From NCBI GenBank assembly GCA_002269645.1, contig NIVC01002241.1, positions 1 through 64,000 of the forward strand: a DNA stretch of 64,000 nucleotides, given 5' to 3'. The translations under genes were made by a program, and so were the position numbers. The notes below the pieces were generated by a model. That model saw nothing but the letters and a program-made list of their open reading frames with translations, was not told the origin of the DNA and ran no database searches. Positions 96-63,106 of the stretch are shown here, one piece after another (positions within the stretch are counted from its first letter, which is position 1; each line of letters begins with the position of its first letter). The stretch is from Macrostomum lignano. Lineage: Eukaryota.

Positions 96-3000
96 TCAGG
101 GAGGTCTGCCGGTCCTGTCTGCAGCGTTGTCTTCGGTGGGGAAGACGGAGGCTCGCTTGGTGGCCCGGAGGAACCGGATGAGCCGTGGGATGTTCTCGGG
201 CCGGCAAACGTCGTCCAGGGACGGGTTGGGCCCGAGGTGGTTGAGCCGGTCTCGGTTGAAGGCCGGGCAGTAGCAGACGAAGTGCATGGCATCTTCATTC
301 TCGAGGCTGCAGAAGGGGCAGAGTTCACTCCGGCGAACACATCGGAGGAAGCAGTGCCTGGCAAAGCAACCGTGACCTGTGAAGGTCATAGTGAGAGCGC
401 GGATATCTTTTCGATTTTGATTCAAAAGGATTCTCCGCAGCTTGAGGGACGGATTGGGCACTGCCGCACGAGATTGGCGGCAGTTGGAGATACCATCCCA
501 TCTGCGCAAGTGCAGGATGTCCGCCCAGTCGTTAATCTGACGATTAATGACTGTGGCGGGGATGGGGCCAGGGCACGGGGCAAGGGCGAGCCGGAACAGC
601 CCGCCTTAGCGAGGGAGTCGGCGAGCTCGTTACCTTTGAAGCCGGCGTGTCCTGGGATCCACGTGAGCCGGACGGTGTTCCTCCGAGCCAGCTTGTTGAG
701 CTGCCCGATACAGTCGCGGACTGTTCGGGAGTTCGTAGTGGTGTGACACAGGGCCTGTAAAGCGGCCTGGCTGTCAGAGTGGAAGAAGATTCTTCTGTCC
801 TTGAAGTCCTTGCGGTGGAGCTCAGCTGCACAGGAGCTGATGGCAAGGACTTCATTCTGGAAGACGCTGGAGAGTCTGCCAGTGTGTTGGGCGTGAGTAG
901 CAATCACGCGGCCGTTGATAAGGATACAGACTCCAAAGCCGGATAAACCGTCTTTGGAGGATCCGTCAGTGAAGCAGTGAACCTCCTGAGGGGCCCAGCT
1001 GTCGTTGGCGTTCTCCCTGGAGGGGATCGTGACCTTGAAGCGTTGGTAGAGATTGAGGGAGCGCGGTTCAGCGTCCGAAAGGACAGCCGCACTCCCACTC
1101 TCCTCCAGAACTTTAAGGCACAGGTCAGAGTGCGGCAGGAGCTTGCGCTTCGCCATCGCTCTTTGTGGCTTGAAGCTAACACCAGCCTCGATGAGCCGGC
1201 GGGTGGTTTTAGCAGCCTCGCGACGGACAAAGATGTCCAGAGGCGGGAGGCAGAGAAAGGCGTTGAGGCCGTCAAAGGGAGCAGAGAGCGGGGCATTCAG
1301 GATCATGCGGCACGCACGTCCCTGCACCTTTTTGAGGGCTTCGTGGCAGGTTTTAATCTGCAAGGCGCTGGTCCAGACCAGACCGGCGTAAGTAACGGCC
1401 GGTCGGACCATTGCGGTATAGGTCCACCAGAGCCGTTTCGGGGTGAGGCCCCAGGTGGTGCCGACGGCTCTGCGCAGCTGCGCAAGAATCGCGAGGGCTT
1501 TTTTGGTTTTGGCCTGGACGTGGGTGGACCAGCTCAGCCGGTGGTCCAGCGTAACGCCGAGACACTTGGTTTGCTTGCAGGATGGAATTTCCACCCCGTA
1601 AAGCTTTAGTGGGCGAATACGCCAGTTAACCCTGCTGGTGAACATGATCGCGACAGTTTTGGTCTCGGAGAGCCTGAGGCCGCACCTGTCCGCCCAACGT
1701 TCAGCAGAGCGAATGAAGTTTTGCAGAAGATCTCTAAGGGTTTCAGGTGACGGTCCGGATGCCACGGCTGTGACATCATCGGCGTAACCGACCTTGAGGA
1801 TGGGGTCAAGATGGCTGTCCTGGAGGAGCTCATCGATGACCATGTTCCAGAGAACTGGAGAGAGGACACCGCCCTGGGGGCTGCCTTTGCAGACGGTTAC
1901 CGTCCGTTGGTGGCCCAACAGGTGTGCGGTGGCAGTACGGTGGCTGATCATATACATGATCCACCGGGTGAGGTGCGAGTGGGTTTTTCTAGCACGTAGA
2001 GCTCTGTCAAAAGCCTCAAAGAGGACATTATCAAGGCTCCAACAATGTCGAGGAAGACAGCGAGAGCGTAGCCATTACCAAGAACGGCTTTCTCCAGCAT
2101 GTCAACCAGAACGTGAAGCGCGCTCTCCGTGGACCTGCCTGCCCGAAAGGCATGCTGGTTCTCACTGAGCGGCTTGTTCTTCAGTTCCACAGAGAGGAGG
2201 CGCCAGAGCACCAGTCTCTCTAACAGCTTCACCAATGAGGAGGTGAGGCTAATTGGTCTGAAGGATTTAATGGACCGGTAGTCCGGTCGGCCAGGCTTGG
2301 GGATAAATACCACCTTGGCCTCGGTCCAGGATTTCGGAGCAAAGCCGAGCACAATGCAGGCTTTCAGAAGCCGGCAAAGGTTCCGCAGGAAACCGGTGCA
2401 TTTCACCGCCTCCCGCAGGAAGGCTGGCACAACGCCGTCCGGTCCTGGGGATTTGAAGGGTTTGAAGGAGGAGACAGCTTTAGTAACGCGGTCCTCCGTG
2501 ATGATTGAGTCAGCCAGTACGTGTCCGCCCACTGAGTGGTCAGGGGGGGGCCTGGCTGGCTCGTTCGGGAAAAACGCTGTTAGCATCGCTTCCAGTGTTT
2601 CTCCTGGGTTCTCAGTAAGCGAGCCGTCGGCTCTCTTGACTGAGGAGAGTTTGGACATTTTGTCCAGGGTGAGGGCTTTAACGATTCTGGAGGTGGGGCG
2701 GGAGCCCTCAAGTTCCTCACAGTATTCGCGCCACTTGTTGGTTTTGGCGTTCCTAACCTGCCTCTTGAACTCGTGGATAGAGTTCAGGTAGGCGGTTTGG
2801 TCGGCCGGGTTTTTAGTTTTTTGGGCCCTGCGGTGAAGCCTTTTGGCTCTGCGACGGAGGTCGCCAAGCTGCGGGTTCCACCATGGGGCCGACTGTTTGC
2901 CTTTATATGCCTTTAGTGGGCATGAGGCTTCGAAGGCAGCAGTGAGCGAGTCCGTAAGTGCGGCCGCAAATTCATCTGCTTCTTCGCAGGTGTTGATGGA

Positions 3001-3791
3001 GACTGGAGTGCTAGTGCAACGATAGGTCTCCTCCAGGGCAAGCCTGAAGGCGGTCCAGTCGGTATTCCTAGCATTCCGTTTCCAGTAAAGCTGGCCTGCG
3101 TTACGGGCGCTGGCCAGCGTGAAAGAGATGAACTTGTGATCGGAGAGGGACGCCTCAGGAAGCACCCGCCACTCCCTAGTGCTCCGGAAGAGCCTGGGCG
3201 TGGCGAGGGTGGCATCCAGCACCTCCGATCGGCGTCCGTTATTGAAGGTAGGGGTACTACCCGAGTTACAGAACTCAAGGGTTGTAGTAGCAATATAAGC
3301 CAGGAAGTCTTCACCTCTCTGGTTTATATCAGAACTGCCCCAGTGGGTGTGGTGGGCATTGATGTCACCTGCCACGAGCAGCTCATAGTTTCTGGTGGAG
3401 CAGAGCTCGACCAGTGTGACAAGCTCTACTGGGATCATCTCGCCGTCGCCCGGTAGGTAAACCGAGGCGATGAGGGTAGTCCTCCCAGGGAGTATGTCTT
3501 CAGACTGGATGACACAGATGTCCCTGGTGGACAGGTCTGATCTGAGCCATGCGTTAATAGAACTGGACACCATGATGCAGGATCTTGGTGCCAGGTTTCC
3601 CTCCCGGGTACCAGCGGTTAAACACTGGTAGCCGGTGGGGACATGTTGGGGCTGCCCCTAAGCGTCCAAGGTTCCTGGATAAGGATAATCCCTGGCACGT
3701 ATTGGTCAGTGTGCTTCAAGAGGTTGACTGAAGCAGCAATGCTGTGCTGCAGGTTGACCTGCAAGCAGTGGATGCCCTGGGAGACAGTCAT
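96..3791 (-). CDS. Retrotransposon ORF2 (APE endonuclease, reverse transcriptase, RNase H, CCHC-like finger), about 1230 aa, with three single-base frameshifts
   Basis: ATG at 3791: MTVSQGIHCLQVNLQHS..ILIQEPW. Motifs include AGDINAHH, SDHKFISF, KSPGPDG, FRPISLTS, QHAFRAGRST, PQGGVLSP, YADD, FTDGS, SDSQAAL, WIPGHAGFKGNELADSLAK and CPFCSLENEDAMHFVCYCP. Frameshifts at about 3646-3651, 2033-2034 and 564-567. Confidence 0.9.
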
Positions 3792-11964: not shown

Positions 11965-12410
11965 ATAACACTCATCCGAAATCTCACACTGAGAGATAAT
12001 CTCATCGGAAATCTCACGCAGCGAGATAATCTCATCGGAAATCTCACGCAGAGAGATAATCTCATCGGAAATCTCACACAGAGAGAAAAATACCATCGGA
12101 AATCTCACACAGAGAGATAATCTCATCCAGAATCTCACACAGAGAGATAATCTCATCCAGAATCTCACACAGAGAGATAATCTCATCCAGAATCTTACAC
12201 TGAGAGATAATCTCACCCAGAATCTCACACAGAGAGATAATCTCATCCAGAATCTCACACAGAGAGATAATCTCATCCAGAAACTCACACAGAGAGATAA
12301 TCTCATCCAGAATCTCACACAGAGTGATAATCTCATCCAGAATCTCACACAGAGTGATAATCTCATCCAGAATCTCACACTGAGAGATAATCTCATCCAG
12401 AATCTCACAG
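11965..12410. repeat. Minisatellite, 30 bp (GAGATAATCTCATCCAGAATCTCACACAGA)
   Basis: Visible tandem array; same family as 17478-17725. Confidence 0.95.
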
Positions 12411-12550
12411 AGATAATTACTACCCCATATAGACACGCACGCTTATCGTCCCAGGTGCTAGAAGTCCATATTACAGAGATTTCCCAATCCTATCAATACT
12501 TCACTCTACATTCCCAGCGACAATTCATTTTGAAATCTGCATTCCCGCAG

Positions 12551-15696: not shown

Positions 15697-16875
15697 GTGA
15701 GTTCATAAGTGAGTGAGTTCATGAGTGAGTTCATGAGTGAGTTCATGAGTGAGTTCATGAGTGAGTGAGTTCATGAGTGAGTGAGTTCATGAGTGAGTTC
15801 ATGAGTGAGTTCATGAGTGAGTTCATGAGTGAGTTCATGAGTGAGTTCATGAGTGAGTTCATGAGTGAGTTCATGAGTGAGTTCATGAGTGAGTTCATGA
15901 GTGAGTTCATGAGTGAGTTCATGAGTGAGTTTATGAGAGAGTTCATGAGTGAGTTCATGAGTGAGTGAGTTCATGAGTGACTAAGTGAGTTCATGAGTGA
16001 GTTCATGAGTGAGTGAGTTCATGAGTGAGTGAGTTCATGAGTGACTAAGTGAGTTCATGAGTGAGTTTATGAGTGAGTGAGTTCATGAGTGAGTGAGTTC
16101 ATGAGTGAGTGAGTTCATGAGTGAGTTCATGAGTGAGTTCATGAGTAAGTTCATGAGTGAGTGAGTTCATGAGTGAGTTCATGAGTGAGTGAGTTCATGA
16201 GTGAGTGAGTTCATGAGTGAGTTCATGAGTGAGTTCATGAGTGAGTTCATGAGTGAGTTCATGAGTGAGTTCATGAGTGAGTTCATGAGTGAGTTTATGA
16301 GAGAGTTCATGAGTGAGTTCATGAGTGAGTGAGTTCATGAGTGACTAAGTGAGTTCATGAGTGAGTTCATGAGTGAGTGAGTTCATGAGTGAGTGAGTTC
16401 ATGAGTGACTAAGTGAGTTCATGAGTGAGTTTATGAGTGAGTGAGTTCATGAGTGACTAAGTGAGTTCATGAGTGAGTTCATGAGTGAGTTCATGAGTGA
16501 GTGAGTTCATGAGTGACTAAGTGAGTTCATGAGTGAGTTTATGAGTGAGTGAGTTCATGAGTGACTAAGTGAGTTCATGAGTGAGTGAGTTCATGAGTGA
16601 CTAAGTGAGTTCATGAGTGAGTTTATGAGTGAGTGAGTTCATGAGTGACTAAGTGAGTTCATGAGTGAGTTCATGAGTGAGTTCATGAGTGAGTTCATGA
16701 GTGAGTTCATGAGTGACTAAGTGAGTTCATGAGTGAATTCATGAGTGAGTTCATGAGTGAGTTCATGAGTGAGTTCATGAGTGAGTTCATGAGTGAGTTC
16801 ATGTGAGTGAGTGAGTGGGTTACTGACCGACTGTCTGACTGACTGACTGACTGACTGACTGTCTGACTGACTGAT
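15697..16875. repeat. Minisatellite, 12 bp (GTGAGTTCATGA), followed by (GACT)n
   Basis: About 90 units to about 16802. Confidence 0.97.
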
Positions 16876-17055: not shown

Positions 17056-19992
17056 ATGCATTCAAGAAGCAAATCCCCTGATGATTATTCAAAGTTCAGC
17101 ATCCTACTGTGGCCGGACCGCCTTCTCCAGCTCCTCTCCGTCATCTGGCCGATGGGCCTGTCGTTCGGGCTGTTCGGAATCGAACTCGCGACCTCGCCTG
17201 GCCAGTGCCTGCTCGACCATCGTCAGAATGCCAGTCAACAGACGATGGAGTTTCTCAATCAGCTGTGCCCGCTGCTGCAACCGGTTGGGACTCGAACCCG
17301 CGACCTCGCGATAGGGTTGCTGACCTACGCCGGGCTGATGTGGCTGCCGCACCTGTGGTGGAGTCACGCTGTTGGCCCCCTGCTGCGGCGGAGGCTGCTG
17401 CTGGTGCAGAGCGAGCTGCGGCAGCTGACAGACCTCATCGGGAGGTAGAGCGGGGGAACGGTTAATCTCTTGACTCTTAGATAATCTCATCCCCCGAAAT
17501 CTCTCGCACGGAGCTAATCTCATCCCGTAGAATCTCTCTCACAGAGATAATCTCATCCCAGAGATCTCTAACAGAGATAATCTCATTCTGTAGAATCTCT
17601 CTCACAGAGATAATCTCATCCTGTAGAATCTCTCTCACAGAGATAATCTCATCCTGTAGAATCTCTCTCACAGAGATAATCTCATCCCCCAGAATCTCTC
17701 TCATAGAGATAATCTCATCCCCCGAAATTTCTCTCCACCAGAGAAGCCGCTGAGCCGCCCCGCCAGCCGCCCCTTCTCGGCGGCTTCTCGGCCATCGGCG
17801 CCGCCCGCCTGGCCAGCTGCGAGGCCGGTCGCATCGACTGGACGCTCGGCCACCGCCTGGCCGCCTGTGGCGCGCCTGGGCAGCCAAGCAGGGGGCCTGC
17901 CTTGCTGGCCAGATCCTGCTGCTCGCCTGTGGCGCCCTCGCCTGCGGCGCCGCCGGCTCCCTGGCGCCGTTTCCGGCCAGCCGGACGTGCCGAACCGATC
18001 GCCACGGAGCCGCCATGGCCACCTGCGCTCAGCCGCTGTCGCGCTGGGCGAACGCCGCACTGCTGGGCCTCCTGGCCGCTGCTGCCGCCGCCTGCGCCGC
18101 CCAAGTCGCCTTCGCCCGGCTCCGCTTCGCCCAATCGAGGCTGGCCTTCAGGGAGGACGCCTACATGGAGGCCAGCTTCTTTGCCAGCTTCATCAAGCTG
18201 ATGGCGCTGGGGTACTATAGAAATGAAGTGAGACCGGCTGAGCCACTCACTCATGAACTCACTCATGAACTCACTCATGAACTCACTCATGAACTCACTC
18301 ATGAACTCACTCATGAACTCACTCATGAACTCACTCATGAACTCACTCATGAACTCACTCATGAACTCACTCATGAACTCACTCATGAACTCACTCATGA
18401 ACTCACTCATGAACTCACTCATGAACTCACTCATGAACTCACTCATGAACTCACTCATGAACTCACTCATGAACTCACTCATGAACTCACTCATGAACTC
18501 ACTCATGAACTCATTCATGAACTCACTCATGAACTCACTCATGAACTCACTCATGAACTCACTCATGAACTCACTCATGAACTCACTCATGAACTCACTC
18601 ATGAACTCACTCATGAACTCACTCATGAACTCATTCATGAACTCACTCATGAACTCACTCATGAACTCACTCATGAACTCATTCATGAACTCACTCATGA
18701 ACTCACTCATGAACTCACTCATGAACTCACTCATAAATTCACTCAGGAACTCACAATATCACTCATTATTTCCATCCTTCACTCATTGCTTGGCTCATGC
18801 GGGTTCTCTTCAGCTCAGTCCGAAAGCATGACTCATGAGCCAAGCCGATGCTGGCGGCATATTTGCTCAGCCTCCCTGCTCCCGCCTTCATCCGGCCTCG
18901 ATCTCCCTGCAACGCCCCGCGCTGCTTCTTTGGAAGCCCTACGAGAAAATGCCATTCGCCTGCATTCGACAGGCCAGGGAGCCGCACCTGCCCCGCCACC
19001 CCCGACGGAAGTGGCCAAAAATCCTTGCTTGAGTGTCACGCCACACCACCGAGACCGGGGATTAAGAGATGGGGAGTTGAAGCAATCCTATTTAGTCTTT
19101 CTAATCCTTGATGAGGAGTGGGACCTCGTTTCGTGAGAGGGTCGCGCGCGATTAAAACTTTTGAAAAGGAAAAATTATCAAAGGTGATTTAATTTAATTC
19201 TCTTCTACTTCTTCGTGGTTTCTAAATTTGAGGATAAATGTGTTGGTAAAGAAGCAGTAAATGTTGTCGCATTACATTCTACGGAATTCAACATTCATAT
19301 TAGACCCACAATTCACAAATTATCCTACATTCCACAAAAATCGCATGTGCCACATTTTAAATAATCGAACGTCTCCCAAATCCCACAAAACCCACACCCC
19401 CAGAAATCCCACACCCACAGAAATTCCACCCTCCCCAGAAATCCCACACCCCTTAGAAAATACCACATCCCCAGAAATCCAACACTCCCCAGAAATACCA
19501 CACCCCTCAGAAATACCACACCCCTCAGAAATACCACACCCCTCAGAAATACCACACCCATCAGAAATACCACACCCCAAGACATACCACAGTCCCTTGA
19601 AATACCACACTCTCCGATCTCCAGACACTTCAAGGACATTCCGAACATCCCTACAGGTTCACCGCATCCGGGACGTGAGCTTCCACCTGTTGCCCGGCTT
19701 CCTCACCTCGGACTTCCACCTGATGTCGCTGCTATGCGAGGCCAACCAGCACCTGCTCCTGGAGTCCATCCTGCTCAGAGCCTGGACTGAGCGGTTCCTG
19801 CGGCTCAACAACCAGCAGCATCACGGCCTGCACCTGCCCACAGCCCGCCCGGCCGCCGCCGTCTTCCTCAAAGCCGCCCAGCGGTCCGGCGGCCGGCGCG
19901 CCTACACGCAGCTTCGAGCCGAGGACCTCACGAAGCGGCTGGACTTCTCCAAGGTCAAGGTCAAGATGGAGACGCACGCGTGTATCGCGTGA
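17056..19992 (+). CDS. Pannexin/innexin/LRRC8-superfamily large-pore channel, pannexin-like, about 403 aa
   Basis: Exons 17056-17444, 17742-18227 (one C missing at about 17865) and 19657-19992 join in frame through GT/AG sites. There are four hydrophobic segments and two Cys per extracellular loop. [15 protein letters not shown] and [13 protein letters not shown] parallel PANX1 [15 protein letters not shown] and NDLSLYNLFLEEN as recalled. The start codon is uncertain. Confidence 0.7.
17478..17725. repeat. Minisatellite, 30-31 bp (GAGATAATCTCATC family)
   Basis: Fills intron 17445-17741. Confidence 0.9.
18245..18752. repeat. Minisatellite, 12 bp (TCATGAACTCAC), reverse complement of the 15697 array
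   Basis: About 42 nearly perfect units. Confidence 0.97.
19380..19610. repeat. Minisatellite, 18 bp (CAGAAATACCACACCCCT)
   Basis: Short intronic array. Confidence 0.85.
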
Positions 19993-27274: not shown

Positions 27275-29989
27275 TTACTTAAACAGACTTCTTCTACCGC
27301 CGCCTCCGCCGCAGGCTCCGCCCCCGCCGCCCACGCACTCGTCATCGTCGGCGTTGAGCATATCCTCGATCCGGGCGTGAATCTCTTCAAAGCTGGGCCG
27401 CCTGTTCTCGTCCGAGTCCCAGCAGAGGCGCATGAGGCGGTAGACAGGGTCCGGACAGCCGGACGGCCGGGGCATCCTGTAGCCGTTCTCAACCTGATGG
27501 AGCACATCCATGTTGCTCATGCCCGGGTACGGCACCCGGCCGTAGGTGAGCAGCTCCATCAGCAGGATGCCGTAAGACCAGACGTCGGATTTGATGGAGA
27601 ACCGGCTGAAATTGGCGGCCTCCGGCGCGGTCCACTTGATCGGGAACCGGGAGCCGTGCCTGGCCTCGTACTCCTGGCCGATTTTCAGCAGTCGGGCCAG
27701 CCCGAAGTCGCAGATCTTCGCCACCCGATTGTCGCCGACTAGAATGTTGCGGGCAGCCAGGTCTCTGCGGATTGGGGAAGGGGATTATTGGGATTCTGTA
27801 GCTGCTTTGACGCTCCCAGGTTTATGGGATTGCTTGGGATATTTATGGGTGCATGGCATTCTATGGGTGAATGGGATAGATAGGGACGTATGGGATTAAT
27901 ACAGATACATAGGATAAATGTGGATAAATTAACATGCTTGCAATAGGGGATGAGGGATAAATACGAGATTAACGAGTAAGGTAGGGGGTGGATGGGATGA
28001 ATAGGGAATACATGGGATAAATAGGGAATACATGGGATAAATAGGGAATACATGGGATAAATAGAGAATACATGGGATAAATAGGGAATACGTGGGATAA
28101 AAAGGGAACAAATGGGATAAATAGGAAACAAATGGAATAAATAGGTAACACATGGGATAAGTAGGGAACACATGGGATAAATAGGGAATACATGGGATAA
28201 ATAGGGAATACATGGGATAAATAGGGAATGCATGGGATAAATAGGGAATACATGGGATAAATAGGGAATACATGGGATAAATAGGGAATACATGGGATAA
28301 ATAGGGAATACATGGGATAAATAGGGAATACATGGGATAAATAGGGAATACATGGGATAAATAGAGAATACATGGGATAAATAGGGAATACGTGGGATAA
28401 AAAGGGAACAAATGGGATAAATAGGAAACAAATGGAATAAATAGGTAACACATGGGATAAGTAGGGAACACATGGGATAAATAGGGAACATATAGGATAG
28501 ATAGGGAACACACGGGATAAATAAGGGATGTAAACTCTCACCTGTGAATATAGTTCCGGCCCTCCAGATAGGCCATCCCGGCGGCCACCTGCGATCCCAT
28601 GAACAGCAGGTCCTTAACAGCCAGGCTCCGGCCGGCCGGGCCCTGCAAATAATCCAACAGACTGCCGTGCTTCATCAGCTCGGTGACAATGTAGATCGGC
28701 TCATCCTGGGTGCACACGGCGTATAGTTGGATGAGGTTGGGATGACGCAATCGTTTCATAGTCTGCGCCTCGCGTAGGAAATCTTTAGCATCCATAGTGC
28801 CCGGCTTCAGGGTCTTGACGGCCACCCGAGTTGTGCTGTTCCAGACGCCTTCCCACACTTCGCCGAATTGGCCCTGGCCAACCAGATTGCGCAGCTGCAG
28901 CGAAGCCTTGGGAATCTCCCACATGTCCACGGTGTCGTAGGACAGGCCGATCGGCTCGGGGACATTGGACCGAACGCAGGGAGCGACTAGGCGGGTGCAC
29001 AGGCCGTTGGACTCGGCACTGTAGTGCGCGATCAGGTCCGGCACGGTGCGGAATTTCACGTGCCGACTGATGAACAGCAGGCCGCTCTCGTGCCGGCGAA
29101 TCCGGTAGTGCTTCACCACCGAGTGGTCCCGGACGGACAGGGAGTACGCGTGATGCCGCCTGGACGAGCGGTTCTCGCAGTTGCGCACTAGAAATGAGCC
29201 AACTCGATTCTCGGTGCGCAGCAGTAGAATCTGCGCGTCCATGCGCGTTAACTGGCCAAAGAACCAGGGCTCGGAGTCGATAGTCTCGGCCTGGGCTAAG
29301 AAATTCGACGGCACGTAGCCTTGACGACCGGTGGTCAGGCCGCGAGCCATCCACCAGGGCCCCTGGCCGCTGTCCACCACCTCCAGCATCTCGTCTTTGT
29401 TAAATGACAGATCCTCCTCGGTTCGAGCTTCGTAGTTGTACATGGCGACGAATAGGTTGGCTTTGCCAGGGGAAGCCGCCGAAGCCGCCACTGCTGCCGC
29501 CGCCTGCTGTCGAGGGCTGCTCTCGGCTGCGCCAGCTGGAGCTGCCGCCGTTGCCGCAGAAGATGCAGCGGCGACAGCGGAAGGCGCAACGCAGTTTAAA
29601 GCAGAATTATTATTATTGATAAGCCGCTCCTCTGCGCTGCCCAGCAACGACTGGGACGCCTGGTAGGAGGCCCCGACAGGCTCGACGGTGCAGGCAACAG
29701 CCGGGGCCGCCGACATCGACGTGGACGCCGAGACAATGTCTGCCGCATTGTTATTATTGTTGACATTGCTATTGTTATTGTTGACAGCTATGGAGCAGGT
29801 GGCCGAGCTGATCAGCGCTGCTGATGTTGTTCCGCCAGTTGTTGCACCGGCGCTGCTACTACTAGGAGCGGCTGTTACTGCTGCTGTTGCTGCTGATGCT
29901 GCACCAGGGTCGGCAGCCGAAGCCGCTAGCGAAGCTCGGTGACGCGTAGACGAGCGCAACGATTTGAATGGGCGCAATGCGTTGCCCAT
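27275..29989 (-). CDS. Src42A: Src-family non-receptor tyrosine kinase (Src42A/FRK-like; SH3-SH2-kinase), 645 aa
   Basis: Exons 29989-28542 and 27764-27275, with the intron splitting HR|DLAARN. Motifs include MGNAL, SH3 [25 protein letters not shown]2 [36 protein letters not shown] and FPIKWTAPE. Confidence 0.93.
27900..28530. repeat. Minisatellite, 20 bp (ATAGGGAATACATGGGATAA), with a 300-bp internal duplication
   Basis: Fills the Src intron; the variant block at 28061 recurs at 28361. Confidence 0.95.
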
Positions 29990-30756
29990 GGTTAGGAGCA
30001 GAGAAGAAAGCAACAACAGAGAGAGAGTAGGGAGACTGAGAAGCAGGCGATAAACTATGGCCGGCGGCGCTGGCTGCTGCGCATTTCGGCGATTTGGCTG
30101 CAAATGTCAACAAAACAAAATTGCAGTTAAAAAAAAAACAGCACAAAAGCTTCAAGATGGGCTGGAGAGAGGATTAAATATAGGGGGAGAGGATGGGATG
30201 GCATTGCTGCGGAATGGGTTTGTAGCAGCAGTATGCAGTAGTAAAAGGAAATCGGAGAACAAAGAAGCCAAAATACACCTCAAAAACCGCGCGTCCACCA
30301 ACCCCCTCTCTCTCTGTCCTCTCGATCCAATAAGCTAAAATCTATATAGCAGAAAGACTGCCAGTGCAATGCGTTCACCATGGGCGGGGTTGGGGGTTGG
30401 GAAGGACAGGAGGGAGGGCGGGAGAGACAGTACAGGAACCGAGGATGGTACCGGAGGGTCTTGGGGACCTGAAATTGGGGCGATCGGGGCAGTGGAGGAA
30501 GGGGAGAAATATGTGGTGAGGAACCGGACAGGGGTGTGCGGGGTGGGGTGGGGCTGATAGCCAGCTCAACACAGCGCTGTACACACAGCAATCGGCGGCG
30601 GCAGCAGCAAGCAAAGAAGACCACGGGAAACTTTATACTTCGGCTTATATTGGTTGGCCGAAACAGGAGGGCTTGAGGGAGCCGGACAGCGTACGCTTGC
30701 AGCGCACAAAGAAGGCGGGAGGCGAATGTTTCTAAAATTGCGCGTACCTTTTATAA

Positions 30757-42600: not shown

Positions 42601-45600
42601 TGGAGTCGTCAGTTCACGACAAAGAGACAAGAGATTTCTTTGCAGTGGCTCCCTGACGACCAGAGTTATTGACAACGCGTCAGGCCAACCAATAAACCCC
42701 ATTTGACTCGGTCTGTGCCCCGAATAAATATTTAAAAATTTCAGTCATGCAAGACACTGCCAAAATCATGACAACTTCAAACAAATAGTTGGACTCTACC
42801 AACTGGAAGCTTGCCATTGCCACGGCAACTCTACGCCGACATCTACGACATCTCGTACATTCAAAAACAAACGACGCAAGTGCCACGAAGTCAGTGCAGT
42901 GCAAGAGCCGAAAATTACAGTGGCGGTCTGGACTGTAAGTGCCACGAAGTCAGTGCAGTGCAAGAGCCGAAATTACAGTGGCAGTCTGGTCTGTAAGTGC
43001 CACGAAGTCAGTGCAGTGCAAGAGCCGAAATTACAGTGGCAGTCTGGTCTGTAAGTGCCACGAAGTCAATGCAGTGCAAGAGCCGAAAATTACAGTGGCA
43101 GTCTGGTCTGTAAGTGCCACGAAGTCAGTGCAGTCCAAGAGCCGAAAATTACAGTGGCAGTCTGAACTGTAAGTGCCACGAAGTCAGTGCAGTGCAAGAG
43201 CCGAAATTACAATGGCAGTCTGGTAAGTGCCACGAAGTCAATGCAGTGCATTGAGTGCAAGAGCCGAAAATTACAGTGGCAGTCTGGTCTGTAAGTGCCA
43301 CGAAGTCAGTGCAGTCCAAGAGCCGAAAATTACAGTGGCGGTCTGTAAGTGCCACGAAGTCAATGCAGTGCAAGAGCCGAAAATTACAGTGGCAGTCTGG
43401 TCTGTAAGTGCCACGAAGTCAATGCAGTGCAAGAGCCGAAAATTACAGTGGCAGTCTGGTCTGTAAGTGCCACGAAGTCAGTGCGGTGCAAGAGCCGAAA
43501 ATTACAGTGGCGGTCTGTAAGTGCCACGAAGTCAATGCAGTGCAAGAGCCGAAAATTACAGTGGCAGTCTGAACTGTAAGTGCCACGAAGTCAGTGCGGT
43601 GCAAGAGCCGAAAATTACAGTGGCGGTCTGGACTGTAAGTGCCACGAAGTCAATGCAGTGCAAGAGTCGAAAATTACAGTGGCGGTCTGTGGCACTTAGT
43701 CTCAAACTTAACTTTTTACTTCAAATACGGTCGTAGTAACTTGTTTAACACTTTACTATAATATTTATGCACGTATAAATTGTGCCTAAAATAATGCAAC
43801 TTCATCCCATGATTAAATTGAACTTCCACATGATGCTTCATACGGCAACGCAGACGGCAATAACTTGATTCTCGACTATTGAAGTTGCAAAATGTTCTCA
43901 ATATCAGATGATTCATCAAAGAAAAGAAAAGAACAAGCACGATTTCAGCACGGTCTTCAACGGCATGGGTTGTTGGCTTTGCAAGAGATTGCTACCATTC
44001 GTGCTGTATTGAAATCCGAAAATTTTTTGAACATAGTTATTCGACAAGCTTGCCTTAGATCTTTAAAGTCAACTACAAGTACTATGCTTCAATGAGGCAA
44101 GTGCTGTTAGAGTGACAGATTTATGCAATACTAGACGTCATATATGCAGCTCTTACACTATCGATTGACTGTCTCTATTTGCCACCTTATTTGCCACTTG
44201 TAAAGAGCTGCTTGTGTGCACCAATGATGCGCATTCCTCCAGATCTTTGATCGAGATAAAAGAAGTTGCAAGCGACATTCTACGAGCAGTCGTATGGCAT
44301 CACCAATTAGCAAAGTCACGACCTTGAAAACCACAAAAATCACCAAGTTTTTAACTGGCTTGCCAAATTTTGTGAAGGAGATTACAAAATTTTCTTGTCC
44401 GTATGAATATTCACTTCGTTTCTTGTATGTTATTCACCAACAGCAATTTAATTTGTCCTGAGATACAAAAGTATTGCTTTAATTATTATTTAATATTTTA
44501 TGCCTATACCAATTTCAATGCCGAATTCCACGCCGTCTCCTGCATTGTAAGTGCAGGAGACAATATTTAGTCAGATTCTTCAACTTACTGGACTACCTCA
44601 GCTGAAAAGAAACCCAAAAATGGCTTCGTATCAAAGTTCTATAATTTAAGATATCATTTGGGAGGCTTGTGGCCCTGCAACTGAGGATCTGGGAGGGTGG
44701 CAGCCCAGCAAATGAGGATCTAGGAGGCTGGCCTAGCAACTGAGGATCTGGGATGGAGGCAGTCCAGCCTGAGTAGCTGGGAGGGTGGCTCAGCAACTGA
44801 GGACCTGGGAGGGTGACAGCCCAGCCTGAGTATCTGGGAGGGTGGCAGCCCAGCAAATGAGGATCTGTGAGGCTGGCCCTGCAACTGAGGATTTGGGAGG
44901 GTGACAGCCCAGCAACTGAGGATCTGGGAGGGTGACAGCTCAGCAACTGAGGATCTGGGAGGGTGACAGCCCAGCAAATGAGGATCTGGGAGGGTGGCTC
45001 AGCAACTGAGGATCTGGGAGGGTGGCAGCCCAGCAAATGAGGATCTGTGAGGCTGGCCCAGCAACTGAGGATCTGGGAGGGTGGCAGCCCAGCAACCGAG
45101 GATCTGTGAGGCTGGCCCTGCAACTGAGGATCTGGGAGAGTGGCAGCCCAGCCTGAGTATTTGGGGGGGGGGAGGCTAGCAGCCCAAATTGAGCATGAAG
45201 GTCAAGAGATCCAGCAGCATACCCAGTCGCGGCTCAAGCGGCAGCCTAGCAAGCAGGCGCCCCAGCGGGGTCAGCTCATCATTAGCGTCCAGCGCACGCA
45301 TCTCCCGCAGAGTGTGCTCAGCCTCCATAACGGCATCCAGTGGCGGCGGTTGCGGCGTCTTAGCCAGGAACTCCGGTATGGGTCCCAGCCGGAGCAGTTT
45401 GCCCATCAGCGACAGTTCGTGCAAGGGCGAGCGCAACAGTTCGGGAGTGACGTGAGCTTCCATTCGTTCCTGGCGAGCCCTGGAGCACAGGTGAAAGCAG
45501 AAGCCAGGCCTGGTGCGACCGGCCCGACCGCGCCGCTGCTCCAGGTTGGACTTGGCGGCCCAGACGGTGCAATAGTGAGTCAGGTTGTTCCTAGAGGTGA

Positions 45601-46018
45601 ACAGCTTCACCTTGGCTTTACACGAGTCGATTACAAATACAACATCGTTGATAGTGATGGAAGATTCGGCAATGTTGGTGCTTAGTATCACCTTGGTAAC
45701 GCCGTCTGGCACCGGTTCAAATACTCGACGCTGATCTTCGCGAGGAATCTGCGAGTGCAATGGCAGAATAGTGTAGGAGGCGTTCCCGAATTCCGGATGG
45801 TTCTGCAGGTGGCGCGCTAATGAGAATATGAGGCTCCAGCCAGGCAAGAAGATGAGCACTGCACCCGATACGGGCAGCGTCTGGATGTACCTGGATGAAA
45901 AAAGGTTTTAGGGGTTAGTTTTCGCATTTCTATAAGTGTTTTCGATATTCAGGTGAGTAGTATTTGTAACACTCGTAGTAATTAGCAGCAGTACAGTAAT
46001 AAAAGTAGTAGTAGTAGT

Positions 46019-46105
<87 letters not shown>

Positions 46106-46107
46106 AA

Positions 46108-46156
<49 letters not shown>

Positions 46157-47375
46157 CAATTAGCTCACCTGAGCAGAGCTTCAATCAATTCGAAGCTGGT
46201 CTCCCGTTCGGAAATTTTAGCCATGGCAGCTTTGGTCTCGGCCGAATATTCATCCGAGCAGATGAGGTTGCAGTTTTCATCTGCGGGATCGTCTGGCGCG
46301 CCGCCGACGCCGCCGCCTTGTCTTGTCTCTTGTCTTGTGATCCTTTTGTCGCCGGTAGGCGTGGATTACCCGAATGGTTACTCTCGTTCCCATCGGGTTT
46401 TTGACCTTGATATTGTTTAGGGAGGTGCTCTGGGTGGTCGGTCCAGAGCCACTCTGATAGGGGAAGGTTTGCCCCCGAAACATAGTTTTTACACTATGAT
46501 CGAGGGCCTCTCCCCCCCCCCCGGTTCTCTCTTTGCCGGCCGGAAGGCCGCCCGCTTGGCACCTCTTGACGGTGGAGAACCGTTGCACCAGCCGACGCCG
46601 CCGCCACCTCCGCCGTCTTCATCGTCGTCGTCGTCATCCTGGCCGGCGCGACCTCTGCCGCTTTTGCCTCGTTTTATCGGCGGCGGCGGCACAAATTTCA
46701 GCATTTCGATGCAGTCCTCTAGAAAATAACTTTGCACCGGATGAACCCGACCGTCGATTTGCATGCAGACGCAGGGGTTGAAGAATTCGGTAAACAGAGA
46801 GGTGTCAACCGTAGCGGACATTAGAATCAACCGAAGCTGCGGATTAGCCCTAATCACATCGCGCATAATAGCCATGACAAAGTCCGTGTTAGCGTCGCGC
46901 TCGTGAATCTCGTCGATGATCACGTGACTAACGCCGCGAAGGCCGCCTTCGAGCCGGCGCAGAAGGGTGCCGACTGTGACGTATTGTAGGGCCCCGTACG
47001 GCCGGGGCGTCACGGTCTCGAAGCGGACCGAGTAGCCGACGGAGATCCCGAGAGGCTCGGCGCGTTCAGCCGCGACTCGGTCCGCGATGCTGATGGCGGA
47101 GATGCGGCGCGGCTGGGTGACGATGATGTTGCAGTGGGCACCGCGGCCGCTAGACAGATAGTCGTCCAGGATGAACTGCGGCAGCTGGGTGGTCTTGCCC
47201 GAGCCGGTCTCGCCTCGGATCAGTGTGACGGAGTTTTCGTGTACAGCGGCCAGGAGCTGCTCCCGGTGCGCCGCGGCTGGCAGCTGGTTGCGTTCGGCTA
47301 GGAGGCGCTGGTACTCGGGATTGGCCGACTGCGGGATGGCATAGGCGTGTGGTTGACGGACAGACAGACAAACAA

Positions 47376-47430
<55 letters not shown>

Positions 47431-47453
47431 CAGACAGACAGACAGACAGACAC

Positions 47454-47508
<55 letters not shown>

Positions 47509-47509
47509 C

Positions 47510-47554
<45 letters not shown>

Positions 47555-50500
47555 ATACCAACCTCTGCAGCGAACTGCTCAGCCAGTCGTTGGCTGATCT
47601 CCTCCAACGAGGCGAACGCGTCCGGTCCTTCATCGATGTTGCAGGACTGCCAGGCGTTCCAGTTGGGCACAGGCGGAGACCAGGGCAGGGTGCAGGGCCG
47701 CTGCCTGCGATAGTTAATAGGTTTAAATGTGTGTAAAAAGTAAAAAAGAATCAAAACTCAAAAAGATGCAATCTTACTTAGGCGAGGGTTCAAAGTCGGT
47801 CACGTGATAATTGATAAGCAGGCTGACTCCCGCGTCTCCATTGGCGGCATCGGATCCGCCCGGATACTGCGCATCAGCAGCATCCCCAGCGTCATCTTGA
47901 TCTAGATTCGGCGGCCGGACCACCGGTCTCAGCTGCAGGTCCTGCAGCAGGCCGTCTAGCTGGGCTTCAATCTCTGACGCCAGGCGCAGCGTCAATTCCG
48001 GCACATCTTCGCCGCGCTTCTTTTTCGACCGACCAGTGTAGGCCTCGATGTCGCCTAGGTGGAACAGCTGGCGAACCAAGGATAAAGCGCAGGCTTTACT
48101 AGCGGTCTGCTTGTTTGAGCCGTGCTCAACTGCCGTGATGCTTCGGTTTGTTCGACGGCACTGGATAGTCATCTTGGCTGAGAAGCTTCTGCCAACGGGT
48201 TGTGATCAGGATTGTTAAAGCTGATGGCTTAATGGGAATGGGAATTGCTCAGATGGTCAGTGACTCAATGGGAATTGCTCAGATGGTCAGTGACTCAATG
48301 GGAATTGCTCAGATGGTCAGTGACTCAATGGGAATTGCTCAGGTGGTCAGTGACTCAATGGGAATTGCTCAGATGGTCAGTGACTCAATGGGAATTGCTC
48401 AGGTGGTCAGTGACTCAAAGAGAATTGCTCAGGTGGTCAGTGACTCAAAGGGAATTGCTCAGATGGTCAGTGACTCAATGGGAATTGCTCAGGTGGTCAG
48501 TGACTCAAAGAGAATTGCTCAGGTGGTCAGTGACTCAAAGGGAATTGCTCAGATGGTCAGTGACTCAATGGGAATTGCTCAGATGGTCAGTGACTCAATG
48601 GGAATTGCTCAGATGGTCAGTGACTCAATGGGAATTGCTCAGATGGTCAGTGACTCAATGGGAATTGCTCAGATGGTCAGTGACTCAATGGGAATTGCTC
48701 AGATGGTCAGTGACTCAATGGGAATTGCTCAGATGGTCAGTGACTCAATGGGAATTGCTCAGATGGTCAGTGACTCAATGGGAATCGCTCAGATGGTCAG
48801 TGACTCAATGGGAATCGCTCAGATGGTCAGTGACTCAATGGGAATTGCTCAGATGGTCAGTGACTCAAAGGGAATTGCTCAGATGGTCAGTGACTCAATG
48901 GGAATTGCTCAGATGGTCAGTGACTCAATGGGAATTGCTCAGATGGTCAGTGACTCAATGGGAATTGCTCAGATGGTCAGTGACTCAATGGGAATTGCTC
49001 AGATGGTCAGTGACTCAATGGGAATTGCTTAGATGGTAAATAACTCAATGGGAATTTCTCAGATGGTAAATAACTCAATGGGAATTGCTCAGGTGGTCAA
49101 TGACTCAAAGGGAATTGCTCAGATAGTAAATGACTCAAAGGAAATTAATGGCGAATCTGCTGATTTAACTAAGACTGAAACAAACAACCTCAATAATACG
49201 AATGCACTCAGACTCACCAGTTGGGCCATTCGAACAAAAAACCATGCACAATGTACTGTAACAGAGAGAAGACGGCGGCCTAAAATGTGAGGAATAGTTT
49301 TTATTCTGGTTGACCTAATAGATTGTTTTGTACTGCCGCTGTTTATATTACTTGTAAGTAGCATAATCAACATTTCCTCACAATTTAGGCCGCCATTAAA
49401 TTATAGCAAATTTCACCTAGCTCCGCTTGGCAACAAAATGTATATTGAGCACCAATTTGATGCCAAGTGATTTGATTTATAGATTAGGGAAAAGTTTCGC
49501 CGCAACAGGTGAGTCTGGTGCCTTCTTATCAATGCTATTAAATCAATCCAAATATAAAAGTACAAGCAGTTACTACCTTCGATGATCCGGGCCAATAGAA
49601 CTATAGTGATAATCGATTTTGCCTTGTTTAGTCGTCTGCAGGTACTGGTGCAGCCGGCTCTTGGCATTGTCTATGGTCCAGCCTCCGTGGATGTCGGCTG
49701 TGAAGTCAACTTCCTCGGCCTGCGATAAGAATCATATCAACAGGTATAATAGAGCTTTTGTCTATGGTAGCAAGGCCGGCACAGCGGCTTGGGCCCATAG
49801 ATTTTATATTCTCTAGATAGGAGCCGCTTTGTATTGCGGTAATAGGGAAAGTGCGACCCTTTTTTTGGTCACTTGTGTGAAAAAGCTGACATGAGTTCAG
49901 TAGCTTAGGGACATGGACGCTATTTTTTGAGAATTTGATAGAACTTCTCGTTTAGTAAGAGTAGATATGTATCTCAGTGGAATGGAACTTTCGTATCTCA
50001 GACATGCCCACAAATGAGTTAAATAAAAAGCTACTCAATCAAACTAACAATGATGCATGCACTGCAGAGACTACTGACGAAATTGAGTTCAGTAGTTGAT
50101 TTTCGCGCTGTTGCGACTAGCAGAGAAAGCGTATTCTGAGGAGCTGCTGCCACCCTTGCTACCATAGACAAAAGCTCAAATCTTTCCTTTGGCAAACACA
50201 TCTTGGATTAAATCCAATGCATCACCGAACCCACCTCTTCCAGTCGCTTCTGATCGGCAATTCTATCGATATAGCCATGCCTAGGTCCCCCCAGAGCGCC
50301 AGTTTGCGGGCCGCCACCTCCTATGCCAGCCTGGTCGGCAGCAGCGGCCTGGAACCCGACCGGACCGCCGCCAGCCATCACCGGTTTCTGATACGGGCCA
50401 GCGCCGCCAATAGCCGAGCATTCTAACGAGTCCTGAGTAAACTGCGGCACTTCAGAGGCCGTCATTTGGCCCTGCCTGACCAAATAGGCTACGAAATCTC

Positions 50501-62200: not shown

Positions 62201-63106
62201 TTAACACACACTACCAATTATTACAGTACAAACTTACTGCTTACACCATTTTTGCACCCAACAGCCGCAAAGCAAATAGCTCACCTTAGTAAGAAGCTTA
62301 ACCGTCTTCTTCTCCTCCGGCGGCACTTTAGTGAGCTCGGCGATGCACTCGTCTACGGCAGCTTTGAGCAGTTCGGGCGTCATGCTGGGATCGAAGTAAT
62401 TAAACCAATACTTGCCGTCAGTCTCAGTGACGGATGGCAGATCAGTGTTGCTCCAAGAGGCGGCCATCTGAACGCAGGCGGCTGCCAGAGTCTCCGGTCG
62501 GAGTCTGAGCACCATCATGGTGAGGTGCAGCAGATTGGTACAGTTATAATAGGCCGTCTGGATCAAGGGTCTGGGCAGATTCAAAGCGCGACAGCCCCGA
62601 CTAAGCATATTGTGCGGATGCGTGATGGTCAGGTTGAAGCCGAGACAGGGCAGGATAAGGCTCTCCAGCAGCACGATCTCTTCGCCGACTTGCGACATCT
62701 CCTCGTCGCTCACCTGCAAATTAATGGAAAAAATAACCGTTTCTAAAGTTATTTTTCGATACATATCGGCTTATTAATTTTGGTGGCCGCGCACTTAGCA
62801 AACTGATAATAAAAGTAGAAACCAGAAACAAAGACAAAGACCTCAGTAACTCATTTCAGTTACTGAACTCGCGCGAGTTCGAATCTCATTTTATATATTT
62901 TCCTCACCTGTTTGATATCGGCCACCTGTCGCTCGTGTCGAAAGTACTGCTGCACAACGTAGGCCAGCCGACGCGGGCAATCCTCCATTTTAGCAGCCAA
63001 AAAGAAACAGGCGGCGGCCACTTTGCCCAGTGGCAGCTTGTGCGATGGCCAATAGATTAACAGGCGGTGCATCATAATGATCGCGGCGTTCATCACCACC
63101 TGGGCG
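59287..63106 (-). CDS. CycT: Cyclin T (P-TEFb subunit); first coding exon lies beyond the window
   Basis: Exons 63106-62908, 62713-62285, 60478-60084 and 59617-59287 are in frame. Motifs include AIIMMHR, FLAAKMED, LESLILPCLGFNLTITHPH, DGKYWFNY, LTIDEYKKRR and a His/Gln-rich C-terminus. Confidence 0.88.
59675..60045. repeat. Minisatellite, about 28 bp (TTGATGAGATGCCAATGCTCAAAGGGGG)
   Basis: Fills the last cyclin T intron. Confidence 0.95.
60600..61300. repeat. Minisatellite, 29 bp (GAGGATCTGGGAGGGTGGCAATCCAGTCT)
   Basis: In a cyclin T intron. Confidence 0.95.
61620..62150. repeat. Minisatellite, 21 bp (ACCACCCCTCCTGTTCACCCT)
   Basis: In a cyclin T intron. Confidence 0.95.

Follow-up and report, generated by a model that had tools for sequence, protein, structure and literature searches.

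Pannexins (PANX), the innexin INX-6 and the LRRC8 proteins are large-pore channels whose solved structures show subunits arranged in a ring around a wide pore, with seven subunits in the pannexins. The literature regards the innexin superfamily as represented in chordates by the pannexins and refers to its invertebrate members as innexins (PMC8769644, PMC3928549). The molluscan 'Group 7' innexins have been described as pannexin-like through their glycosylated extracellular loops (Sadamoto et al. 2021, PMC8049302). Here, we analysed a stretch of 64,000 nucleotides from Macrostomum lignano (contig NIVC01002241.1, positions 1 to 64,000; hereafter the window) and examined the locus at 17056-19992 on its plus strand. 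Judged from its sequence, we take this locus, with a probability of about 0.8, for a gene of the innexin/pannexin superfamily that encodes a large-pore channel subunit, belongs to a pannexin-like clade and has a broken frame in this assembly. In its sequence motifs, its profile scores and its predicted fold, the clade stands closer to the chordate pannexins than to the innexins. While the Group 7 proteins sit within the molluscan innexin phylogeny and have longer loops, this clade departs in core motifs throughout the protein. A sequence-only reading of the locus had taken it for a pannexin-like, divergent and possibly undescribed branch of the large-pore superfamily, which is supported by the family profile, profile-profile alignment with hhalign, the fold search and the absence of the clade from the literature.

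The locus is a real spliced gene with three exons (Table 1). Their boundaries are exactly those first proposed, and the gene model was confirmed except for one frame shift. Since this GC-rich stretch contains several open frames, on the plus and the minus strand alike, the coding potential was tested against the conserved exons of the window itself. The codon log-likelihood is positive only in the proposed frames. Likewise, only in these frames does the GC content at the third codon position (GC3) far exceed that at the second (GC2), with GC3/GC2 values of 0.77/0.43 in exon 1 and 0.91/0.41 in exon 3; this bias is as strong as in the conserved genes of the window. Independently of the gene model, each of the three exons is matched by flatworm proteins in tblastn. 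The junction of intron 2 lies within a conserved block, and the alignment to the relatives crosses both junctions without gain or loss, while the start and stop of the candidate stand at the family positions and its C-terminal end is the same as in the relatives. Since two precise introns are present, the candidate is not a processed retrocopy. A tblastn search with the relatives showed a single copy of the channel gene in the window.

The conceptual protein alone has no match in Pfam (E ≤ 10), among PDB sequences (E ≤ 10) or in a word-indexed database of 5.8 billion proteins (E ≤ 1), and BLASTP against human PANX1 gave a best E of 0.18. An exhaustive phmmer search of 1.84 billion cluster representatives matched seven proteins. 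The closest of these, P0001 (423 residues), was found at 2e-35 with 34% identity over residues 14-397, and the other six range from 1e-11 to 1.5e-7. By cluster look-up, the relatives include hypothetical proteins of Paragonimus (four species), Echinostoma caproni, Rodentolepis nana / Hymenolepis microstoma and the monogenean Cichlidogyrus casuarinus, together with two further clusters from ENA and Logan assemblies; the named relatives are trematodes, cestodes and this one monogenean. Against a family hidden Markov model (HMM) built without it, the candidate scores 165 bits (E 1e-52), and a profile search of the word-indexed database with the family alignment returned P0005 only, among the matches listed. 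The neodermatan members carry low-complexity N-termini of 100-170 residues and long loop inserts, and the C-terminal domain of the clade has its own conserved end, R.EDLS.[RK][LF]NFSK[IV]R[VI]K.E. None of the clade accessions occurs in a 2022 compendium of 1,521 non-chordate innexins, which lists other innexins of the same species, and no paper citing any of them was found in the searchable literature. As far as we could check, the clade is so far undescribed, while the superfamily itself is well known.

For the placement of the clade, we used reference sequences identical to PDB chains for human PANX1 (426 of 426 residues with 6m02_A), PANX3, INX-6 and LRRC8A (residues 1-411); the PANX1 strings quoted in the sequence-only reading were thereby confirmed. 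The lancelet pannexin and the cnidarian sequences were taken from published source data, and three fly and worm innexin sequences were added, which score 352-433 bits at full length on the Pfam Innexin model (PF00876). In the source data of PMC8769644 (supplementary files 5 and 8), the tunicate-labelled entries Tu_Cin_01/02 and Tu_Cro_01/02 repeat the lancelet sequences listed above them almost letter for letter, apart from truncation at the N- or C-terminus or a small number of gap characters. On Pfam Innexin, true innexins including the cnidarian one reach 79-433 bits at full length (positions 1-333), PANX1, the lancelet pannexin and PANX3 reach 45, 34 and 30 bits in the N-terminal half only, and the new clade reaches 0-26 bits, likewise in the N-terminal half only. 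The coverage of the model by the clade extends over positions ~14-116 of 333, and up to 5-129 in weak sub-threshold matches. The highest values come from relative P0004/P0012 with 26.2/26.1 bits against a cutoff of 25, on the TM1-EL1-TM2 region (TM, transmembrane helix; EL, extracellular loop).

Searched against all PDB sequences, the family profile matched large-pore channels only. PANX3 was found at 8e-17 through two collinear stretches, TM1-TM2 and pre-TM3 to TM4, PANX1 and PANX2 at 2e-10 to 2e-9, and INX-6 at 2e-6. In pairwise phmmer comparisons, every clade member scores higher with human PANX1 and PANX3 than with innexins. The alignment of the clade with pannexins by hhalign has a score of 83 (E 4e-10, probability 96.7%) over 236 columns from TM1 to TM4, whereas that with innexins has a score of 49-52 (E ~1e-5) over ~100 columns covering TM1-TM2; the control alignment of pannexins with innexins scores 57-66 (E 3e-8 to 7e-7) over 67-89 columns. 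These profile searches do not place the locus firmly among ordinary innexins, and the similarity to the superfamily is significant via the family.

In the joint alignment, the clade shares discrete characters with the pannexins and not with the innexins. Before TM2 it has H-x3-P-[YF] in place of YYQW[VF]P; the relatives read QHECYPF, HHQYYPF or HTNVPF at this position, with H where pannexins have H. After TM2, [YW][LI]P..[LF].W is followed without insert by the gap-free motif [DN]L.[LF][IV]..EL, and an 'L..YL...' block precedes TM3 in both groups. EL2 is short and contains [E]F.C.[IL], while innexins have an insert of 25-35 residues (FP[RK]...C[DT]F). The innexin TM4 motif NEK.Y.FLWFW is absent from all clade members, as in pannexins, and a post-TM4 motif [SN]D[FL].[FL]..L[FLC].[EA]N completes the shared set. 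The clade shows all pannexin-type core motifs in slightly altered form. The candidate itself retains three of them (post-TM2, EL2 and C-terminal) and has lost the one before TM2. The sequence-only reading had pointed out that YYQW is missing here, which is correct, but the absence is partly due to a deletion in EL1 of this copy, which removed the QHECYPF-type motif of the clade. In that reading, three PANX1 segments had been aligned by hand. For none of them does another ungapped placement in the candidate score better; the three are collinear and pair the same segments as HMMER and hhalign do. In shuffle tests, the post-TM2 alignment scored 49, compared with best scores of 9.7 ± 5.3 after shuffling (0 of 300), and the TM1 and C-terminal ones gave p ~0.05 and ~0.02. 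The general layout of four transmembrane helices and two cysteines per extracellular loop is common to the clade, the chordate pannexins and the innexins compared here (INX-6 and UNC-9 of C. elegans, Inx2 and ShakB of Drosophila, and a cnidarian one), and the similarity to the innexins lies in TM1-EL1-TM2. From the chordate pannexins, the flatworm clade differs by an identity of only 16-22% on well-aligned columns, by the lack of a recognisable N-terminal pore-lining helix, and by the non-conservation of W74/R75 of PANX1.

The predicted fold and the phylogeny point in the same direction. An AlphaFold2 (AF2) model made with the family alignment has a mean predicted local distance difference test (pLDDT) of 53 and a predicted template modelling score (pTM) of 0.46, with pLDDT 60-83 in the helices and a beta-hairpin in EL2; a single-sequence model (pLDDT 40) was not used. 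All of its top 50 fold matches in the PDB are PANX3, PANX1, PANX2, LRRC8 pore domains or INX-6. PANX3 comes first, with a best E of 7e-4 and TM-scores of 0.43-0.49 for this pLDDT-53 monomer model, LRRC8 pore domains follow from rank 5, and INX-6 stands at rank 38. In a bootstrapped neighbour-joining (NJ) tree of 242 well-occupied columns and a small panel, the clade and the pannexins (human and lancelet) are each recovered at 100%, and the split between clade plus pannexins and innexins has 99% bootstrap. The chordate pannexins are monophyletic to the exclusion of the clade (100%), which is therefore outside them and at best their sister group. Combined, these results place the gene firmly in the innexin/pannexin superfamily, and by sequence it appears to be neither an ordinary innexin, nor a member of the chordate pannexins, nor an LRRC8 protein. 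The clade is probably, at close to even odds, a sister lineage of the pannexins. Rather more tentatively, and at somewhat less than even odds, we propose that flatworms carry, beside ordinary innexins, a separate and unrecognised pannexin-type lineage which is sister to the chordate pannexins.

In the frame-repaired protein, four helices are apparent from hydropathy, the AF2 model and the alignment. Hydropathy peaks mark TM1, TM3 and TM4, and TM2 is weaker, with a Kyte-Doolittle mean over 19 residues below 1.5. The AF2 helices (residues 19-46, 77-133, 178-202 and 230-273) each align with the matching PANX helix; the first has a pLDDT of ~80, and the family motif F..LW.DR.L lies just before TM1. 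The region of TM2 and the post-TM2 motif is the best BLASTP segment pair of the candidate with PANX1. As had been read from the sequence, there are two cysteines in each extracellular loop, C51 (GQC) and C71 (NQLC) in EL1 and C213 (RTC) and C225 (ATC) in EL2, and all four align with conserved cysteines of the family, the pannexins and the innexins. EL1 of the candidate is shortened and lacks the LQG...QHECYPF segment of the family. 'SNFS' of PANX3 is paired with 'snas' of the family consensus when the profiles are aligned, so that the N58-A-S sequon of the candidate falls at the N71 position of PANX3. The C-terminal tail of ~110 residues has conserved motifs of its own.

The expected protein of 403 residues is obtained only after one base is added. 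The exon lengths total 1211 nt, which is not divisible by 3, and the protein therefore exists only with one additional base at 17859-17865, a disruption missed in the sequence-only reading. Besides the exon sum, two signals reveal it. The codon log-likelihood switches frame inside exon 2, and the splice frame from exon 1 matches the family HMM up to 17862 (HMM positions 330-355), including a conserved FSA...DW(S/T)L block, while the frame of TM3, EL2 and TM4 matches from 17862 onwards (HMM positions 362-495). The best repair, +1 nt, gives 176 bits with the family HMM and exactly 403 residues; removal of 8 nt nearby gives 175 bits. The four-helix protein proposed earlier thus holds for the repaired frame, while the assembled frame ends after 282 residues. 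All GT/GC-AG joins were enumerated, and none from exon 1 to the frame of TM3/TM4 retains TM3; enumeration of frame-restoring micro-introns inside exon 2 gave nothing plausible. With a GT donor, a single candidate intron had a realistic length (17828-17883, 56 nt); it was rejected because the conserved DW[ST]L block would be lost with it and because it is rich in GC, which the real introns are not. The disruption lies within three imperfect CCGCCTGG-like units at 17853-17880, which read CCGCCTGG CCGCCTGTGG CGCGCCTGGG. Such a context is prone to slippage, and both a real indel and an assembly error are therefore possible.

Several observations weigh against the assignment of the locus to a pannexin-type channel gene. 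Apart from the frame being broken in this assembly, the candidate alone has no significant match, and its placement therefore rests on transitive homology through the seven relatives. The structural model is of low overall confidence. At the profile level, the family HMM gives INX-6 29-32 bits, which is higher than the 23-26 bits of the lancelet pannexin. The small innexin panel was made up without flatworm, mollusc and annelid innexins, and since lophotrochozoan innexins are thus missing, long-branch attraction between two divergent groups is possible. The candidate has further lost the family-conserved H..PF before TM2, S.WQ before TM3 and N-x-S at the start of TM4, and it has a weak TM2 and an alanine-rich TM4, all of which would fit decay. 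No N-terminal pore-lining helix is evident. Since the constriction residues W74/R75 of PANX1 align with Q61/Q62 of the candidate, permeation properties cannot be derived from the alignment.

The one-base shift may reflect a base dropped by the assembly or a recent pseudogene, and we give the two roughly equal odds. In the latter case, the locus would be a recently dead member of the pannexin-like family with a real deletion, a product truncated after TM2 and no channel function, a reading we rate only just below an even chance. In its favour, the disruption was mapped by two independent signals (codon bias and family HMM), splice choices do not rescue the frame, several family-conserved motifs are lost and EL1 is shortened; furthermore, among ~15 billion sequences, neither the predicted proteins nor the transcript-derived open reading frames (ORFs) include an identical sequence or a close relative, the best match being 34% identical. 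However, besides the single shift, the 403 codons contain 0 stops while each of the other frames of the same exons contains 1-7, the codon-position GC bias equals that of the conserved genes of the window, and both introns have kept canonical boundaries. The four loop cysteines and all 11 of 11 family-invariant residues are also retained, and the shift falls in a low-complexity G/C run, where assemblies drop bases. A more radical reading, in which the locus is no gene at all but a GC-rich island open in several frames that yields hydrophobic Ala/Leu/Arg-rich pseudo-peptides, has practically no likelihood left. Between 17.0 and 18.2 kb there are indeed several frames, on both strands, that stay open for over 100 codons, the conceptual protein consists of 17% Leu, 15% Ala and 9% Arg, and the single sequence has no match at E ≤ 1 in the word-indexed protein search. 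This composition would hardly account for the full-length homology to P0001 and six other proteins, flatworms among the named, for 165 bits against the family HMM, for a frame-specific codon bias, or for exon ends that coincide with canonical splice sites and an unbroken alignment. The phmmer relatives, the family-HMM score and the tblastn matches on all three exons refute it.

The affinity of the clade can also be read differently. It could represent a fast-evolving offshoot of ordinary flatworm innexins, whose likeness to pannexins would be an artefact of long branches or of convergence, and we consider this unlikely. UniProt automatically labels two Paragonimus members 'Innexin', one member exceeds the Pfam Innexin threshold, proteins of parasitic flatworms evolve fast, and both the INX-6 score and the composition of the panel mentioned above would fit such an origin. 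However, the Pfam Innexin model covers the pannexins too, the characters shared with pannexins are five discrete motifs or indels rather than scores alone, and the hhalign match spans TM1-TM4 with pannexins and TM1-TM2 only with innexins. The 99% bootstrap for clade plus pannexins adds to this, as does the cnidarian innexin, which retains innexin-type characters and 79 bits at full length on Pfam. The possibility that parasites acquired a host pannexin by horizontal transfer is unsupported, as the clade lies outside the human and lancelet group, the identity is ~20%, and the lineage of the window falls outside Cestoda and Trematoda and has introns. A relationship to LRRC8, the volume-regulated anion channel, with loss of the leucine-rich-repeat (LRR) tail, is very improbable. 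At the homologous second EL2 cysteine LRRC8A reads YRCAHPLATLF, and the sequence-only reading had noted that CAQPLS of the candidate echoes CAHPLA. The LRRC8A string is correct, but the echo is specific to the window copy, since other family members have C[VM]L at this site. KNDFAFMLHL of LRRC8A also resembles [ST]DFHFMSLL of the family (SDFHFMSLL), and LRRC8 pore domains share the fold class (TM-score ~0.40-0.48). With an LRRC8 profile made of human LRRC8A and two cnidarian LRRC8-like sequences, however, hhalign gave the family a probability of 1-1.5% (E 0.03-0.05), compared with 88% (E 3e-6) for the control of pannexins with LRRC8, and on this basis the relationship was rejected. Furthermore, the family HMM scores LRRC8A and a Nematostella LRRC8-like protein below 0 bits, and the 110-residue tail contains no LRR by Pfam, as had been stated earlier. 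Separately, two cnidarian 'innexins' in the source data of PMC8769644, Cn_Nve_02 and Cn_Edi_02, have LRRC8-type N-termini, and Cn_Nve_02 also has leucine-rich repeats, so LRRC8-like proteins may extend beyond chordates.

For a pannexin-type channel subunit, the repaired protein would have a cytoplasmic N-terminus, TM1, EL1 with two cysteines, TM2, a cytoplasmic loop and TM3, followed by the short EL2 with two cysteines, TM4 and a helical cytoplasmic C-terminal domain. By analogy with PANX, INX-6 and LRRC8, the subunits would form a ring around a central pore, and the channel would conduct ions and small metabolites such as ATP. The extracellular domain would be stabilised by two disulfides linking EL1 with EL2, for which all four necessary cysteines are present. 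Since EL2 is short and pannexin-like and EL1 carries a sequon at the PANX3 position, an unpaired surface channel is likelier than one half of a gap junction; this analogy suggests a putative glycosylated surface channel rather than a docking hemichannel. The predicted function of the window copy depends on whether the frame shift is real.

Table 1. Positions of the channel gene, its encoded segments and neighbouring elements, counted from the first nucleotide of the window (a slash marks the exon boundary)
Feature	Position	Strand	Details
Exon 1	17056..17444	+	ATG at 17056; residues 1-130, last codon split, phase 2; donor AG/GTAGAG; short N-terminus, TM1, EL1, TM2, post-TM2 motif; codon log-likelihood ratio (LLR) 0.21; tblastn P0007 2e-8, also P0013, P0001, P0003
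TM1	17122..17187	+	residues 23-44, LLQLLSVIWPMGLSFGLFGIEL; hydropathy peak 1.63; aligns with PANX TM1
EL1 core	17200..17268	+	Cys51 17206-17208; sequon N58-A-S 17227-17235; Cys71 17266-17268
TM2 and post-TM2	17305..17418	+	TM2 residues 84-102; pannexin-type post-TM2 motif 17389-17418
Intron 1	17445..17741	+	297 nt, GT-AG, phase 2; 33-nt minisatellite fills 17479-17722
Exon 2	17742..18227	+	486 nt; acceptor CTCCACCAG/AG; donor GAA/GTGAGA; frame-specific coding signal and family-HMM domains
Cytoplasmic loop block FSA...C..IDWTL	17782-17859	+	exon 2, ahead of frame disruption
Frame disruption	17859..17865	+	equals one missing base in GGCCGCC run
LWRAWAAK	17865-17891	+	exon 2, beyond frame disruption
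TM3	17895-17957	+	exon 2
EL2 cysteines	17988-17990; 18024-18026	+	exon 2; Cys213 and Cys225
TM4	18051-18116	+	exon 2
FF..FI.L	18174-18209	+	exon 2
Premature TGA	18199..18201	+	ends assembled frame; no TM3, EL2, TM4 or C-terminal domain
Intron 2	18228..19656	+	1429 nt, GT-AG, phase 0; 12-nt satellite 18245-18754; 18-nt repeat 19392-19610
Exon 3	19657..19992	+	acceptor CCCTACAG/GT; stop TGA 19990-19992; cytoplasmic C-terminal domain; codon LLR 0.34; tblastn P0001 1e-17, P0005 1e-11, P0003 5e-11
C-terminal motifs	19708-19746; 19783-19806; 19915-19971	+	exon 3; 13-residue motif, WTERFLRL and RAEDLTKRLDFSKVKVKME, respectively
Non-LTR retrotransposon	422-3573	-	two long ORFs, 541 and 511 residues, no internal stops
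Src-type SH3-SH2-tyrosine kinase gene	27275-30103	-	long Ala/Ser/Asn-rich N-terminus
DHX9-like DEAH helicase gene	45176-50570	-	introns likewise minisatellite-filled
Cyclin-box exon	62234-62764	-	

With its two introns, the window copy is the sole intron-bearing member of the clade so far, as 5 of the 5 examined relatives are uninterrupted. The Paragonimus, Rodentolepis and Cichlidogyrus relatives (L003, L004 and L001) are single uninterrupted ORFs in genomes, and P0012 (ENA) and the closest relative P0001 are uninterrupted on contigs which may be genomic or transcript. The ORFs of the three genomic loci and of the P0012 contig are 1770-1899 nt long. Most genes in the genomes of the relatives are expected to carry introns. 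The contrast suggests that introns were lost, or the gene was retroposed, in Neodermata, or else that the window copy gained its introns.

The window as a whole is metazoan DNA, with GC-rich exon blocks between AT-rich introns filled with minisatellites. In NJ trees of this one gene, the core of the DHX9-like helicase joins its cestode and trematode counterparts with a bootstrap of 97.5%, while a bootstrap of 99% separates it from these two. The window thus most likely derives from a platyhelminth lineage other than Cestoda plus Trematoda. The best database identity of the helicase is ~70% and the channel has no close relative, which indicates that the protein collections do not include the source species. 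Around the channel gene, the 12-nt satellite TGAGTGAGTTCA occurs upstream at 15710-16803 in 58 exact units, and its reverse complement occurs in intron 2 at 18245-18754 in 37 exact units, so that inverted arrays of one satellite flank exons 1-2. The minisatellite of intron 1 (17479-17722) belongs to the same 30-33-nt family and strand as an array at 11971-12413, 5 kb upstream, and the 14-mer AGATAATCTCATCC is common to 12115-12385 and 17479-17707. In the retrotransposon, by eye from the translations, the 541-residue ORF shows reverse-transcriptase-like motifs towards its C-terminus, and the 511-residue ORF continues this reverse-transcriptase-like sequence and has an RNase H-like end. The element has no exact match in the gene-position index, and no RNA family was found in the window by Rfam.

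A protostome clade that has motifs specific to pannexins, together with their loop architecture and predicted fold, bears on when the pannexin-type channel arose. It also bears on whether, before chordates, a gene lineage of its own served the unpaired 'hemichannel' function. If the clade is indeed a sister lineage of the pannexins, the pannexin lineage would be older than the split between protostomes and deuterostomes, instead of having been remodelled from an innexin in chordates. Pannexin-type surface channels could then be studied in flatworms side by side with innexin gap junctions, and a parasite-specific large-pore channel would become a candidate drug target. The window copy, divergent and perhaps non-functional, matters less in this respect. 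The named members belong to parasites of medical and veterinary relevance (Paragonimus, Hymenolepis/Rodentolepis, Echinostoma and monogeneans). Since these parasite members have ~20% identity to human pannexins and no close host counterpart, an intact member is worth expression and electrophysiology.

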